Positions 2,576-63,127 of a stretch of DNA of 64,000 nucleotides are shown here, piece after piece. The translations under genes and the position numbers were made by a program. This DNA is from Cercozoa sp. M6MM. Taxonomy: Eukaryota > Protista > Endomyxa: Ascetosporea. Under the pieces are notes generated by a model that had not been told where the DNA came from, ran no database searches, and saw only the letters and a program-made list of their open reading frames with translations. Where the stretch lies: the NCBI GenBank assembly GCA_040357565.1, contig JBDODJ010000062.1; one strand, 5' to 3'. Numbering within the stretch: position 1 is the stretch's first letter; every line of letters starts with the position of its first letter.

Positions 2576-3652
2576 ACGCGTGAGGAGCACGCTGAGAGCA
2601 ATGCGCAGCGTGTGGCCGAGGAAGTCGCAGCGAGTGCCATTGCATCGCCCTCTCATTCGTCAGTTTCTGCAGGGCCGACTGATTCGGTCTACCCGAGCAG
2701 CGAACGGCCGCGAGACAAGAGCGTGAGTCCGCAGAAAGCCGAGCAGAAGCGACTGGAAGGGCAGCAGAAACGGCTGGAGACAAAGCAGGCGAGACAGGCA
2801 GCGAAGGAGCAGGCGAAGCAGGCGAAAGAGCAGGCCAGGCAGGCCAAGCAGGAGGCCAAGCTCGCCAAGCAGCAGGCGAAACAGCAGGCCAAGCAGCAGC
2901 AAAAGGAAGCGGCCCGACAGGAGAAACTGCGCAAGAAAGCGCAGCAGCAGGAAGCAGCTGCAGCAGACTCGCAGATGCAGCAGCAGTCCAAACAGTCCAG
3001 CAAACAGTCCGGCAAGCTAGCGAGGCCGCCGTCGGGCCGTTCGATGCTGCGTTTCGGGAAGAAGCCGGCGGCGGCGCGTGCGCAGTCGGCCGATGACGGC
3101 ACAGTGTCGGGCATGCGTCGCTCGCGCTCGATGCACGCTTTCCCGCTGGACGCGACGCGGCCAACACAGGCAGCGTCGAAACAGCAGCAACAGCAACCAG
3201 TGCAACAGCAGCAGTCGCGTTTGCTGTCGCGTAGCAAGAAGACGCAGCAGCAGTCGAGACCAGCGACGAGACCAGCGAGTGGCGGCAAGACACACGGCCA
3301 CGTGCCCTACAAGATCGTGCGCGGAGGCGAGGCCCCGTCGGGTGCTGCCACACGACCGGCGCAGCCGCCGCGTCGCAGTCAGCAACAGCAGCGCAATCTC
3401 GACGCACTGCGCGCCTCGCGCTCCGTGCCGAACTTCCAGGTGCTGCTGGGACGCACCGACTTTTCGCGTCAGTCCTCCGAGGTGTGTCACTGTCTGTGTC
3501 TCTATGCCCGTGTCCATGTATGTGTAAATCTTGACGCTGGCGTGTGCAGGCGCAGATGTACCAAATGATGGTAAAGCGCGTGCGCCAGCTGCCGGGTCCG
3601 TACGCCCGTGTTGCGCGCATGGTATGCACTTGGCTTAATATCTACCTCGTAA

Positions 3653-3734
<82 letters not shown>

Positions 3735-4529
3735 CATGTGTTTATGTATTTATGTGTGTGTACGTAGTGTGTGTATAGATGTGTATTTATGTATGTGTGT
3801 ATGTGTATGTGCATCTATGGCATCTATGTTTGTGTGCGAGTAGGAACGCTCGCCGCCGTCAATTCCGGCGGTGCGCGAGGAAAGCGACGAGGACGATTCG
3901 GACGACAGTTCGGAGCACGAGATGGACCTCGGACAGCACTTTGGCAGTGTTGCCGAGAGCGAGTTGCGCGCTCCGGTAGGCTCTCTGTGCATATAAACAT
4001 GTACAAAGATACATATGTAGTATGATAGTATGTTGTATGTATACATGTCTATATGCGTCGTTGTACGTCCGTAGATCACGTCGCTCAAGGCGTACGAGCA
4101 TGCGCCTCGCGCGATTTTCTTCCGCGACCGCGAGCCCATCGCGACTCGGAGAGGTACACTGTATCTGTATAGAGTATATATATATATATAGATATGTCTA
4201 TAGGGAGCGATCGTTCGCGTCGCTCGCTGCTGTCGAAGCCGATGCGTCGCAGCAGCAGCACAACATGCATGGAGTTGCTGACCACGTCCGACGTGCCTGC
4301 GCCGCCACTGCCGGCATCAGCGTCGTCAGGCCGCTTTTCCAATGGCGTCGATTCGCAGGGTGCCCTCTTCAGCCCATTATATGTCCATCTATAGATATCT
4401 ATAGATATCTATATGTATGTATGTATATACACTTCTGTAGGAATGACGCCCAATGCCAAGAGCAGCGCCGACTCCTTCCCGGCTTCTGTGGCCGCTGCTG
4501 TCGGCGTGATGAACGAAGAGAGTGACTGA
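2576..4529 (+). CDS. Hypothetical multi-exon protein with a Q/K/A-rich coiled coil and low-complexity Ser/Arg regions; 5' exons (~2043-2470) unresolved
   Basis: Long exon 2576-3481 (KQARQAAKEQAKQ... repeats), further GT..AG-bounded exons, last exon ...VGVMNEESD* with TGA at 4527-4529. Confidence 0.6.
3657..3731. repeat. (TA)n(TG)n microsatellite in an intron
   Basis: Seen directly in the sequence. Confidence 0.95.
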
Positions 4530-4864
4530 GCCCGCGACGCAAGCGACTTCGGAGCTTCCTTGCCAAACGCAGCAAAGTTCCGATCTGCGCTTGCCTTAGC
4601 TACGATATATAATTTTGTGATTTCCCTATTTGTTTCATTTAACATCCGTCGCTTGTACAACGTAATTTTGGGCAAGCCCGGCTGAAGTAGCTGGTGCAGT
4701 AGCTGCTCTAACCTAGTAGTAAACCAGTGTGCTAAGTAAGATCGGGACTGAAACCGGTCGGCAAGAATGGAGTTGCTGATGCCTGTAGGCACACACAGAA
4801 ACCTCAATCTCACATGCTACCAACCAGGGATGTGGAAAAACGCACCGATAGCACGGCAGGCGAG

Positions 4865-7680
4865 TTAGACGACGACGCCGCCGCCGACCGGAAGGCCGCC
4901 AGAATGTCGGCCTGCGAGCGTATGTGCATAGTTTGGAGGATTAGCCAGGCGGTAGTTGAGATGGGGGTGTACCTTCCGCGCGAGCGACTCTTCGTTCTCC
5001 TCGAAGGACGGATTCAGCATGGCGTACAGTCGCCGTCGGTTCTCGCTGCACGGGGGTAAGAGGGTATAGGATGCATGGGGATGATAGAGGGTACGCATGC
5101 ATGTGCGCCGAGGTGTGCATGTCGTAGGAGGAAAGCGGCAGGACTTGACACTCGTCAGTGTCGCTGTCGATGGTGGTACTGTAGGTGCCGATCGACGCGT
5201 GCGCGTCGCAGGCCGTCTCATCGCCCGGGTCCTCTTCGCTGTTGTTGTTGTCGCCGTGCTCTCTGAGTCGAGTGCCGTGCAGACCACTGTCGTAGCTGTC
5301 GTTGCTGTCGTCATTGTCGCTCTCACTGTCGCTCTCACTATCGCTCTCACTGTCACTGTCCTCTCTCGGGTGCAGCGGCATGCCGTACGTGCATCTATCA
5401 AGGACGGAAGGGTACATGGGAGGGAGGGCACACTAGGCAGACTACCTGTAGACGGTACACGCCGCTTGTGTCATGCGACGGCCCAGGAAACTGCAGATAC
5501 GTTTCGAAGGACGGAACAGCGTCTTCACGACATCGTCGGCTACGCGTGTAGAACATACACCCTCGTACCTCCCTTACCCCCACTCTTATTCCCTCCCCGG
5601 TAGAGTCTCGATAAGTGTACCCAAGTGAAGTGTCTCGAGTTCTTGCTCCTGCGGCGGCGTGTGGAAGGCCGGGTGCGACGACACGTGCGCCAGCAGCGTG
5701 TTGTCCTCCTCCTCGCACTCCGAATCCTCCGCCGCTCGCAGCACTGTCGCGCGCAGGTGTTTAGACCCTGTGAGGTGGGGACAAACGGGGAAGAATACGG
5801 GGCCAGGGTAGACAGAGAGTAAGAGTGTCAGGGTAAGGGTAGTCAGAGGGTAAGTAGTCAGAGGGTAAGGGTAGTCAGAGGGTAGGTAGTAAGGGGTGGA
5901 GGTGTACGCCGCTGCTTCTTTCGCTTGGCCGAGAAGGAGAAGAGCGCGTGCAGGCACAAGTGATCGGTTGGAAACTCGGCATTCGGCAGCGACTTGAGCA
6001 CAGTGGTGGCCAGTTCCTCGCGGCGCCACCAGTCGTGCCAGCGACGCAGCTTCACTCCTGCACCTGCACGGGGGAGGGGTGATGGGGGGTAACAGGGGGT
6101 GATGGGGGGTAACAGGGGGAAGGGGGTAACAAGGAGGTAACAGGCGGGTACCGCCAAAGAAGAGGTAGTCGAGAGTGCCACGGAAGTGGCCAGTCGAGTT
6201 GGTGAAAGCCGGCTCGCCGTGCTCGTCGTCGGGCAGCGCTTCGCCCAGCGACTCCTCGCCCTGCTGGACTCACAACTTATACCCCTACCCCTTGCCCCCC
6301 CCCCCCGACAAGAAAACGCACCGCATCGCGGGCAGCAGCGGAGGCCGAGCGCAGAGTGAGAGCCGAGATTTGTTCCTAGCATGTGTGTATCAGTAGGCAG
6401 GGAGGACAGGGAAGACATGGTACATCGTCATCGACCGAGGTGAGTAGCGACGACAGCGTGCCTCGCACCAGCAGAGTTTGCTTCAGCAGATTGTACACGG
6501 TCTACCAAGGGGAGAGAGGTAGGTGAGATGGTTTAAGGGGTATGGAGGGATAAAAGGTAAGGGGTGGGACAGGGGACCGAGCCAGGCAGCGAGTTGAGGT
6601 CGCCACAGAGCACGACGCCCTTGCAGCGCGGCATGGTCGACAGCGCCGCCAGCACGCGTCGCAGGTGCCGCGCCTGCGCGAGCTTCACCTGGTCGCGCTG
6701 CGGGTCCCAATACAGGTGCGCATTGAGCACCCACACGCCCTTCTGCGACTGCGACTGCCGCGGCTGCAGGAATACTGCGCACACGCATACAGACATACAG
6801 ACGTACAGACACATACATATATATAGACAGGCAGAGTACGGCCGAGTGCGACGTTGTGCGTGCGGTAGGGGTCCCACTTCTTGTTGAGCGCCGTTGCAGC
6901 CTCGGGTACTCGGTCTAGGTCAATGTCCAGGTGCTCCAGCGACAGTGCAAAGACGGAGCGCCGCCAAAACTGCATTAATATAATATTTGTTCATTATATA
7001 TTATGCATATATGCTGAAGTACAGTGGCCACGCCGTCGCACTTTTTGTTGTGTCGCTTAAGAAAAACGCCGTCGAAGCCGTGCGGCGACAGCAGCGCGTA
7101 GACATCCTCGTAGCGATCGACCTCCTGCAGACAGATGATGTCGGTGCAGTCGATGAAGCGCATGATCCACGCCTCCAACTGGATTGGCACACACCACACA
7201 CATGCACACAGACATACAGACATATAGAAATATCTGTATGTATAGATGTACAAAGGGACTTAAGAGACACCTTTCTGAGTCGTCTTCGCCAGCGAAAGCG
7301 CCGGCGGAACTCGTCGACGTCGTACTGCTCAGCGAGCTCGCGAAACATGGCGCGTCGCTGCGCGCAACAAAGCAAAAGCACAGAACATGCTTCAGTTTAC
7401 AGCCTGTGTGTTTGGTTTCTTTGAGTGCTGTCCTACCGTGTACTCCTGGGCGAGGATGTTCCAGCTGAGCACGCCAAACACGAGACGCTCGGTGTTGACA
7501 CGCGACATCGCCGTCTCCTCTCGCCAGCGCAAAGCAAGCCAACAACACGTCAGGCAGACCTAGGGAACAGCGAAGCACACCGTCTTGTGGAAGTTGCGCG
7601 ACAGTCTCGGTTAAACAGAGTCCGCTGCGCACAATTCGACGACCCGATCCTGGGTAATGAACGCTGCCAGACTGCACACC
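4865..7680 (-). CDS. CCR4/nocturnin/angel-family EEP (endonuclease-exonuclease-phosphatase) protein; start uncertain
   Basis: Spliced exons give the motifs VLSWNILAQ, DIICLQEVD, DGVATFWR, NAHLYWDP, VVLCGDLNSLP and FPTDH, followed by an acidic/Ser-rich C-terminal extension. Confidence 0.88.
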
Positions 7681-8201
7681 AAATGCCGATCACTCTTCTG
7701 CACTCGTGCGAGTTCTACTACCTGACAATGAGCTTGCACTGAGCACCAGCGGCCAAGCTGCACATGCGAGTGGTCCTTAGAGCTGTTTTGCCTTCCTTTA
7801 TTTTTATGCCGTCTCACACGGGACAAACGGACGGAGACCTCTTCGGCCCACATTTCTCGCAACACAGTGCGTTAGATCACATTTAAGTACGCTTTTAGTT
7901 AGAAGTGTAGTGTTATGCACACGCAGACGAGCGAGTATTTGTAAACAATGGCGGTTCAGGATCGCCAACTCGAGCGTTTCTCCACCGTCTTGGTCAACAC
8001 AAGCGTTTCTGGGCGAAGCTTGATCTTGGTGTATTTGTGATCTTGAACCGCTCCCATAGGCGCCCACCTGTCTGCAATCTCATTGACAGAGAAATAGGTG
8101 GCCCCTGCAGCGACCTAGAGCAACCGGCGCGGCGGTAGGTTGGTTTGACGCCTTTGAAGCTAACTGTCATTGACTATTTGCAGGATTGGAGCAAATTGAC
8201 C

Positions 8202-9838
8202 ATGACGTCAAAGGCCATTTTGCATGTGTTCGAAGAGTATCAAGTTGCTCGCACGAAGTTCGTGCAGTCAGTCGCTGAGCTCGCTTCAAGGCCACAAAAC
8301 GCCGAAGCTTTGCAGAATGTTGGTGCACTCGCATTGCTGCGGCCGCTCCTGCTCGACAACGTGCCATCGATTCAGCAATCTGCTGCTTTGGCAATTGGTC
8401 GACTAGCAAGCCATTCAGAAGCCACTGCAGAGTCGGTGATTTCTAACGACGTTCTTCCACAGCTTGTCTACTCTCTTGCCGAACAAAACCGGTACTTCAA
8501 GAAGTCGGCTGCCTTTGTGCTGCGGAACGTGGCGAAGCACTCGCCTGCACTCGCCCAAGCCGTCGCCGACAGCGGTGCACTCGAAGCGCTTGTTGATTGT
8601 CTCGGCGATTTTGAACCTGCGGTAAAGGAGCACGCAGCACTCGCTCTCGCTGCAGTGGCTCGGCATGGACCTGAACTCGCACAGGCAGCGCTCGATGCAG
8701 GCGCTGTGTCGCAGCTCGTGCTATGTGTTCAAGAACCAGAGTTGTCGCTAAAGCGAGTTGCTGCGCATTCAATCGGCGAATTGGCGAAGCACTTGCCAGA
8801 CCATGCGCAAGCAATCGTAGATGTTGGTGCAGTGTCATATCTCGCACCTCTTCTGCAGCACAACGATTCGCGATTGAAGCGCCACACTTGCACTGCGCTT
8901 GCACACATTGCAAAGCATTCTGTCGATATGGCCGAAGCAGTGGTGGAAGCCGACGTGTACCCAAAACTTCTTTTCTTGCTGAAAGATTCAGACCTGGTGG
9001 TGCGACGATGTGCGGCTACGTTGGTGCGAGAGACTGTGAAACATACGCCTGAGTTGGCTCGTCTTGTGGTTAACTGTGGTGGCCACGGAGCACTCGTGGA
9101 TTTCGTTGCCGAAGAGATAGTTGACGAGGGCGAGCGCGAAGTGAGTGCTGACGACAAACTGCCGGCGATAATGGCACTGGGCTACATCTCTGCCTTTTCG
9201 GACACACTCGCCTCAGCAGTGATTCAAGCGCACGGAGTGCTCGCTTTGAAGTCCGCACTTTCTCATGGCAACGCCGATTATGTCCGTGCAGCCGCTGCGT
9301 GGAGTCTGGGCCAGATTGGGCGGCATACTCCCGACCACGCCAAAGCACTCGCGCAGGCAGACGTGCTGCGAAAGCTCGTTGAACTCATCGCCGAAACTTC
9401 GGTGGAAGGCGAAACAAAAGGCGAAACCTCAATGCGTGGCGATCTACACGACAAAGCACTCATGGCTCTCCGCACCGCTCTCAACAAATGCACCATGTGC
9501 TCGGCTTTGGAAGCTCTCATGTTCGTACGTCAACTTCAGTTTAAAGCATGCACGGGTGTGTTGTATCAGTTCTTTCCCTGTAGAATGCACCGCACGAAGT
9601 CTTGAAGCTTGTTCTCGAGCAGTTTGTCAAAATCTTGCCGAATGACAAGGCATCGCGAAAGAGCTTTGTCACCTCTGGTTGTCTTGAGAAGGCACAACAG
9701 TTGAAGACGGAAAATGCACCAGTATTCGAAGATGTCGTGGCTGTGCTCAACAACCTGTTCCCTGCAGAGGTGGTCGCTTACTACCAGCCCGACTTCCACG
9801 AGAAACTAATTGAGAAAATTGACGAAATCGAACCTTGA
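8202..9838 (+). CDS. SPAG6: Sperm-associated antigen 6 / PF16, central-pair armadillo-repeat protein
   Basis: MTSKAILHVFEEYQVARTKFVQSVAELASRPQN... is the PF16 N-terminus, followed by ARM repeats. A single coding intron 9525-9583 joins to NAPHEVLK...FVTSG...YYQPDF. Confidence 0.96.
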
Positions 9839-40284: not shown

Positions 40285-40370
40285 CCACCGCTGCTCGTTA
40301 ACTAACATTCCGCGTAGAAATCAAATGAGACGAAACGGCTCTCCGGAACCCGTGTTGGCAGACGAGTTCA

Positions 40371-40509
40371 GAAAACCAACTATGTAGTTCCCCTGCACCA
40401 GTCCGGGGTGGGTCACAAGATGGCCGTGTCTACCACCCGCTTAGGGTAGGACCATACAACTCCCCTCTTGACATTCCCCCGACACCGACGTCGATTTCAT
40501 GGTTGGTGC
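40371..40509 (-). ncRNA. Structured ~140-nt element, copy A (paralogue of 62965-63110)
   Basis: Shares exact blocks of 35 nt and 31 nt with 62965-63112; substitutions keep the stems paired; ends in TTTT. Confidence 0.65.
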
Positions 40510-40546
40510 CGGTAGCCGGCCTCGATAACTAAACAAAACAAACAAA

Positions 40547-40766
40547 GGACAGACTTAGGGCCACCATTCTGGTGGCTGGAGCTGACTAAAAAGCGAGTTG
40601 GATAGCCCACCCTAAACCCAGGCGAGGACGGACCGGCACAGGGAAACTTGTTACTGACGGTTGTCAGTGAAAGCGGAGACTGCATCACGTAATCTGAGTC
40701 AGTCTGCCCGTAACAAACTACATACGATAGTTGGTTTCTTAGTAGACTGAACCAACTAAAAAAAAA
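40547..40766 (+). ncRNA. Structured element of the same family with an inserted stem-loop domain
   Basis: ggcacagggaaac (40635-40647), inserted stem ttgttac/gtaacaa, then actacatacgatagttggttt..gtagactgaaccaacta and an A-run. Strand assignment is uncertain. Confidence 0.45.
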
Positions 40767-42003
40767 CTAATCCTGCATGGCGTCCGACTCGGAGTCTTCA
40801 GCGTCACTGTCGCTCGCGTCGATGCCTTCCTTCCTCCGCACCTTGTTAGCAACGACCTCACGGAGTTCCTTCACCGCCGCTTGCGAGAGTTGCTGCGCCA
40901 TCTTCAGAGTGCCTGTTCAACGGGTTTCAGCGAGTAGGAGGTACCCCAACGCCCCTGGCCAGTATCCTGATTAAAACAACATACCAAAGAACTCGTCGTT
41001 GGAACGGAACTTGCGCGAGCGGAACTGTGAGAAAACGAGGGTGTCCTCGCCGTTGAGAAAGGCGAGTGTGCCGCATCTGCAGCAAGCAACTTGTGTGCGT
41101 GCGTGTGTGTGTAATATCTAAGAGGAGTACACTCGAAGCACGGCCTCCTCATCGGCCAGCGGGTCCACAATGAAGTCGTCGTCCTCGTCAAGACCCGCCG
41201 TGGCGGCGCCAATCACTCCGCGCAGAGGCACGCCGGCGTCCATGAGGGCGCCCACGCAGGCGTTCAGCGCACACGAGAGCAGCGCGCCGTCGTCGCGCAC
41301 CACCTGGACAGCGATGGCCACCACGCAGCGGGGGTGCAGCTCCCTCTGTACGCACAGTTATACATACAATATATACATACATTATATACATACATATATA
41401 TATATATATAACATTATACTTATCGGTGTGCATGCATGTGAAAAGTACCATCACAACAGTCTTAAGCGTATTCTCGATGGCGTACTCGCAGGCAACCTCG
41501 TCGCCACTGCTGGTACCGGAGGCTCGCGACCACGTGACTGCCAATATACATATATATATATATATATATGCATGTGTGTATATATATATATATATATGCA
41601 TGTGTGTATATATATGCATGTGTGTATTTAAGTATAGATACAATTGTATATATGCAGTTAAAGCACACACACACCCTGTAGCCTGGCGCCGTCTATTTGC
41701 TCGCGACGCGGCGCATCGGCGATCGGGCCGGTGACACTGCAGACGACTGCAAGGACACTGCACATACCAAAACGCACAGTGTAGTCAGTGCTACCCTCAG
41801 TGTCGCCGTTTCTCCACCGACAGCTGCCATCCGCACGGGCAAGAACGCCCAACTCGCACGTCAGCGGGCGAGACTCGCGTTTCTTACTGTCCAGCACGCA
41901 CAAGGACAATGCAACCAACCCCCCCCCCCCACACATCCCATCACATTTTATAGTACCGCCCGTCTGCGCGAGTGTCGCCGATATGCGCTGATTTGTGCTC
42001 CAT
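40767..42003 (-). CDS. EXOSC5: Exosome complex component RRP46 (RNase PH fold)
   Basis: RPLTCELGVLARADGS, VVCSVTGP, HPRCVVAIAVQVVRDDGALLSCALNACVGALMDAGVPL, DPLADEE. Confidence 0.92.
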
Positions 42004-62958: not shown

Positions 62959-62964
62959 CTTTAT

Positions 62965-63127
62965 GCGCCAACCATGAAGTCGACTTCGGTGCCTTGGGGA
63001 ACGTCGAAAGGGGAGTGTATCGTATGGTCCTACCCTAAGCGGGTGGTAGACACGGCTATGCTCTTATGACCCACCCCAAATTGGTGCAGGGGAACTACAT
63101 AGTTGGTTTTCTAGACTCAACTAACTA
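62965..63127 (+). ncRNA. Structured ~140-nt element, copy B, plus 3' hairpin tail
   Basis: Reverse-complement paralogue of 40371-40509; ends tggtgcaggggaactacatagttggttttctagactcaactaacta. Confidence 0.65.

Follow-up and report, generated by a model that had tools for sequence, protein, structure and literature searches.

The two similar elements found in the window (the whole 64-kb stretch of DNA analysed here), referred to as copy A and copy B, do not represent a new RNA gene but ordinary transposon debris. Very probably both are dead, 5'-truncated insertions of a multicopy LINE, and the block by which they attracted attention is the strongly folding distal domain of its 3' UTR. The element is a non-LTR retrotransposon that has spread by target-primed reverse transcription, and the likeness between the two copies is most likely the result of their common descent from this LINE. 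An earlier note on the same DNA had taken them for a two-member paralogous family and had proposed a novel ncRNA under structural selection. The first of these proposals is overturned by the genome-wide collection of copies, which yielded 136 to 233 motif matches as compared to 0 in the controls; the second does not agree with the absence of covariation, nor with the presence of an endonuclease/reverse transcriptase ORF directly upstream of the block in the full-length copies.

The LINE family and its copies in the window

The copies were collected from the window's own assembly, which comprises 23.6 Mb in 2235 contigs. A BLAST search of this genome with the block gave 306 candidates, and all 40 of the candidates that were scored share about 90-92% identity with copy A. 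In the motif searches up to three mismatches were allowed, and the reversed-pattern control that was run for each motif gave 0 matches in every case. There were 233 matches to the 3' terminal 25-mer and 136 to the apical hairpin; the 25 nt with which the block opens gave 122, and the 25 nt that immediately precede it gave 66. The genome thus holds at least 136 to 233 occurrences of the block of ~150 nt, and the copies become fewer going from 3' to 5', with a fall from 122 to 66 across ~30 nt at the 5' boundary of the block.

An alignment of 31 copies together with their flanks showed that most of them keep conserved sequence upstream of the start given in the earlier note, and that all of them extend ~25 nt beyond the TTTT with which that note had ended the element, up to …CTCAAC(TAAC)n; from there on the flanks bear no relation to each other. 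The boundaries had therefore been drawn too narrowly: copy A reaches upstream to ~40579, and both copies pass the TTTT to end in a (TAAC)n-type tail. The TTTT is internal to the element, and corresponds to TTTCC in the dominant subfamily.

Up to 9 kb of upstream sequence was fetched for four of the copies, and one of these loci, L033, holds a near-full-length element (positions 2839-9140, ~6.3 kb) that is bounded by an 18-bp direct repeat. A second copy, which is internally deleted, has an identical 5' start and a flanking repeat of 14 bp, and other loci hold 3' pieces of 2.5 kb, 0.9 kb or 0.24 kb. The coordinates of the two ORFs are listed in the table below, together with those of the copies in the window. 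No Pfam match was found for ORF1. The ORF holds internal tandem repeats, which show up as many overlapping self-similar BLAST pieces in L033 as well as in L031. The ORF2 region matches the Pfam families Exo_endo_phos_2 (2e-10), an apurinic-type endonuclease, and RVT_1 (1.8e-15). The match to RNase_H (3e-4) is below the cut-off of Pfam in the copy examined, and on the basis of this sequence match an RNase H domain in ORF2 is probable. The closest relatives at the protein level are endonuclease/RT/RNase H proteins of eukaryotes, with an identity of only 22-28%, and the nearest Atlas clusters consist of RT/RNase H proteins, found most commonly in Ascomycota and Arthropoda.

Features of the window and of the parent LINE
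Feature	Sequence	Position	Strand	Description
Copy A	window	40352..40579	-	read as an old LINE copy, 5'-truncated; 3' UTR complete except for an internal segment of 63 nt
Copy B	window	62964..63127	+	read as an old LINE copy cut at the T/GCACC hot spot; distal 3' UTR domain and CTAACTA tail remnant
3' end of a second, related LINE lineage	window	40629..40770 (may begin near 40598)	+	head to head with copy A
ORF1	L033	3052-4290		412 aa
ORF1	L031	6733-7842
ORF2 region	L033	5010-8835		two frames in this copy; Pfam

In L033 the stop codon of ORF2 is located at 8835 and the block starts at 8976, with 135 nt in between. The ORF is followed by a 3' UTR of ~300 nt, of which the block constitutes the final ~160 nt, and the element ends in (TAAC)n. 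A palindromic hairpin of ~20 bp spans the ORF2 stop codon (L033 8824-8873), a remnant of which is found in the window at 40560-40577; Rfam gave weak miRNA-like matches for this palindrome, on both strands.

The (TAAC)1-4 at the end of the element directly precedes the downstream target-site duplication. More than 20 short copies have clean target-site duplications of 11-19 bp and of variable sequence, which start right after the tail and the first bases of which often continue the TAAC register. The common 3' end, the variable 5' ends and the duplications in tail register together point to target-primed reverse transcription that is primed on the tail.

Copy A on the minus strand and copy B on the plus strand were recovered at the places reported before, and the identical blocks of 35 nt and 31 nt are indeed present in both. 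In a pairwise alignment with flanks the two are ~85-89% identical over ~150 nt, and the similarity to copy A drops abruptly at either side of copy B. Copy A could be sub-divided into a proximal piece (40521-40579), which aligns with L033 8840-8901 (82%) just after the ORF2 stop, and a distal piece (40370-40520), which aligns with L033 8965-9118 (92%). The 63 nt deleted in between are equivalent to L033 8902-8964 and are present in other copies. The element delimited in the earlier note (40370-40509) corresponds to the distal structured domain of copy A. Copy B aligns with 3' UTR positions 140-297 (89%), and the 183 nt immediately 5' of it are unique in the genome. The two copies carry 19-21 differences from the family majority (21 in copy A), each of them being 8-11% diverged, and no closer relative of either than the main family was found. 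The differences between copy A and copy B probably represent, for the most part, neutral decay after insertion, CpG-to-TpG changes among them; the apical T of both copies is a CpG site in the main family. No target-site duplication is recognisable around copy A or copy B, and the tail end of copy A has decayed. A tblastn search found no RT-coding sequence of the LINE family within the 64-kb window.

The second LINE lineage represented next to copy A has the terminal ~45 nt (…ATAGTTGGTTTCTTAGTAGACTGAACCAACTAA…) in common with it. Parts of this piece are similar to the contigs C1541 and C142 (77-91%), and about a dozen other loci resemble its terminal ~43 nt (89-95%). In the relatives in C1541 and C142 the folded domain is separated from the shared terminal hairpin by ~250 nt of additional sequence. 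LINE 3' ends also occur as inverted pairs, some of them tail to tail, at C847:5435-5686, C750:1554-1756, C1741:296-374 and L086 (C21:89935-90450), and one LINE copy is inserted in the opposite orientation in another, the target-site duplication being the reverse complement of the domain start. This suggests that insertions may land in sequences resembling the tail.

Elsewhere in the window (8145-9605, plus strand) an ORF with armadillo repeats was identified that has SPAG6/PF16, which belongs to the central pair of the flagellum, as its nearest match. This suggests that the host is a flagellated eukaryote.

Predicted fold and substitutions between copies

The sense strand of a main-family copy has a predicted folding energy of -60.7 kcal/mol (z -2.66), which is equalled by 2 of 200 shuffles, whereas the antisense strand (z -1.22) is not set apart from its shuffles. 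For the whole 3' UTR in sense orientation the z-score is -3.45. The predicted fold consists of four parts, namely a closing helix, a small hairpin, a long interrupted hairpin that bears the CCUACCC…GGG(C/U)GG apex, and a 3' terminal hairpin. The (UAAC)n tail can in addition pair with UAGUUGGUU just upstream, and so form an alternative terminal hairpin.

The claim of structural selection was founded on substitutions between copy A and copy B that preserve pairing, and a test of covariation across all collected copies had been proposed as the way to check it. In an alignment of 15 diverse copies, with copy A, copy B and the most diverged ones included, none of the 41 base pairs in the RNAalifold structure showed compensatory changes, and the covariation term was penalising (+1.55). 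The preservation of pairing is not above chance: the fraction of paired cells is 95.8% in the RNAalifold structure versus a mean of 95.8% after shuffling (score 0.087 versus 0.087), and 92.2% versus 92.2% for the five stems put forward in the earlier note. In a per-pair tally made by hand over the 15 copies, ~33 one-sided changes left the pairing intact and 25 changes disrupted it, which is close to the outcome of random transitions, since a transition in a helix results in a wobble or Watson-Crick pair in at least half of the cases. The lack of covariation is in fact to be expected, because most differences between copies post-date insertion and have not been subject to selection.

Two individual observations read differently in the family alignment. 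The change of both sides of the stem cgggg/ccccg appears there as a U-A pair that became a G.G mismatch in copy A (pair 36-127), and the apical hairpin, described as invariant on the basis of the two copies, has an A-U pair in 3 of the 15 diverse copies and A.C in the other 12, the most abundant subfamily included. Outside this genome, pattern scans of metagenomes gave no match to either the domain or the terminal motif.

Most plausibly, the folded 3' domain acts as the recognition and priming tail for the reverse transcriptase of the element. This role is proposed on the basis of the strand-specific stability of the predicted fold and of the terminal ~45 nt, which are common to several LINE lineages and which in some cases have been inserted as that stretch alone. 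The ORF2 protein would recognise the folded 3' domain, the terminal hairpin and the repeat in the LINE RNA, and would begin cDNA synthesis on that 3' tail, as in the LINEs of the stringent type.

Positions of the 5' ends

To describe the truncation, 102 copies were sampled with a perfect 3' motif as the sole criterion. About 32 of them reach ORF2, and 70 are cut off within the 3' UTR. The 5' ends of 12 of these 70 are located at 3' UTR positions 139-141, with which the closing helix begins; 0.8 would be expected there (Poisson 5e-11, or 1.3e-8 when corrected for the choice of window). These positions are equivalent to L033 8974-8976 and to 62964-62965 in copy B, and they also coincide with the start of the element in the earlier note. 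Seven of the junctions are confirmed by target-site duplications. The remaining 5' ends include 5 at positions 129-131, the base of a G+C-rich hairpin, 31 at 198-248 and 1 at 249-271. The 3' strands of predicted helices contain 30 of the 70 ends, versus 31% expected (p = 0.024), a modest enrichment that fits with stalling of a reverse transcriptase during the unwinding of a folded template. The location of the 5' ends suggests that the RNA template was folded.

The starts at 139-141 occur in at least two subfamilies, the main one and one that is characterised by a TAAACT insertion. The short copies L069 and L109, which carry this insertion, match the long contemporaries L084 and L140, and no diagnostic substitutions specific to the short copies were found. 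Since the short copies match their long contemporaries, they have been made repeatedly from LINE RNA and do not represent a SINE lineage. The precise end may be due to fall-off of the reverse transcriptase before the G+C-rich hairpin, to protection by a bound protein, or to RNA processing.

We consider it possible but rather doubtful that the folded domain is freed as an RNA of ~158 nt with its 5' end at T140/G141, and that the LINE repeatedly mobilises such promoter-less mini-elements. If true, the freed RNA would account for the fact that 12% of the 102 copies, from at least two subfamilies, start within the same 3 nt. It is very unlikely that the domain of ~158 nt is a discrete RNA in its own right, processed or internally started at T140/G141 and copied by the LINE as a SINE-like unit of which copy B would be one example. 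The pile of 12 ends within 3 nt, the target-site duplications at seven of them and the drop in copy number at the same boundary are in line with this possibility, but the short copies lack diagnostic substitutions of their own and are spread over at least two subfamilies, so that there is no self-propagating lineage, and neither a known ribozyme nor a head of tRNA, 7SL or 5S origin was found. Moreover, there is a simpler cause, as the reverse transcriptase may drop off after copying the domain, before the very stable G+C-rich hairpin upstream of it, and it is at the base of that hairpin that the smaller pile of 5 ends is located.

A SINE was rejected as an identification for the short copies, which have no lineage of their own and for which ARAGORN and Rfam reported no tRNA, 7SL or 5S head. 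ARAGORN detected no tRNA-like gene, no Pol III A and B boxes were recognisable by eye, and a partner SINE that has a promoter of its own was likewise not found. The precise 5' end was also the reason to attempt a threading of the domain onto an HDV-like ribozyme by hand. P1- and P2-like pairings can be drawn, but L3 would measure ~85 nt and there is no J4/2 to supply the catalytic C, and this identification was rejected as well. The Rfam searches, carried out on the whole window at the gathering threshold and on both copies and one full 3' UTR with E up to 10, gave nothing relevant.

The earlier note had left a choice between an RNA-mobilised element and a Pol III-type ncRNA. The former was right in kind, as the element is the 3' end of a LINE, and the latter is contradicted by the internal position of the TTTT. 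An independent structured Pol III ncRNA gene that was repeated by accident, perhaps with CCUACCCUA as a telomere-like template, has a negligible probability in our view: the sense strand is more stable than its shuffles, copy A and copy B both have the T-run and CCCTAA-like motifs are present, but this is opposed by the lack of an Rfam match (E up to 10) and of covariation, by a T-run that the dominant subfamily has as TTTCC and that precedes the true end by ~25 nt, by the RT-encoding ORF immediately upstream, by the target-site duplications, 5' truncation and repeat tail, and by the location of the putative template in a predicted helix. The template role that had been considered for CCUACCCUA is not in agreement with the position of this motif within a predicted helix of a transposon UTR, and a telomerase RNA was rejected on that ground and on the occurrence of the motif in more than 130 copies.

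Comparison with other LINEs

In stringent-type LINEs the ORF2 protein is described to strictly recognise the cognate 3' stem-loop and to start target-primed reverse transcription there (PMC4176376). A stable predicted stem-loop near the 3' end of the sense strand, as expected for a tail of the stringent type, is found in the LINE described here (z -2.66 to -3.45). In UnaL2 of eel and ZfL2 of zebrafish, both of the L2 clade, a stem-loop near the 3' end is followed by a short tandem repeat. The present tail resembles theirs in that all copies have a folded tail, a terminal hairpin and (TAAC)n, the terminal hairpin being found across several lineages. It differs in the size of the domain, which comprises ~120 nt in a predicted three-way junction in addition to the terminal hairpin, and, unlike the elements of the L2 clade, this LINE has an RNase H-like region.

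In R2 the 3' UTR reportedly measures a few hundred nt and is folded, and it is this RNA that determines protein binding and target-primed reverse transcription. The 3' UTR described here is likewise a few hundred nt in length and is predicted to fold, and by analogy may have a similar role in binding. The endonuclease of R2, however, is restriction-like and site-specific in 28S rDNA, whereas that of the present LINE is of the apurinic type and its targets are dispersed, showing only microhomology in the register of the tail.

The LINE clades that combine RNase H with an apurinic-type endonuclease include I, Tad1, LOA, Ingi and related ones. Some of these have a short-repeat tail rather than poly(A), and the I factor, for instance, ends in (TAA)n. 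The order of endonuclease, RT and probable RNase H in the present LINE, together with an ORF1, is like that in these clades, whereas the best relatives in the databases are only 22-28% identical. Like the 5'-truncated copies of L1, the copies are dead on arrival and have a common 3' end, a variable 5' end and target-site duplications. Unlike in L1, the 5' ends pile up at positions 139-141 and 198-248 of the 3' UTR, and the tail is (TAAC)n and not poly(A).

What had been a candidate novel ncRNA with covariation thus turns out to be transposon debris, and a comparison of just two old repeat copies yields pairing-preserving transitions by chance. At the same time an abundant LINE family has been documented, which comprises many near-identical copies and whose folded 3' tail is large. 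Finally, the truncation points of this family map onto the predicted RNA structure, which makes it a convenient natural case of a LINE reverse transcriptase that either passes a structured template or drops off it.
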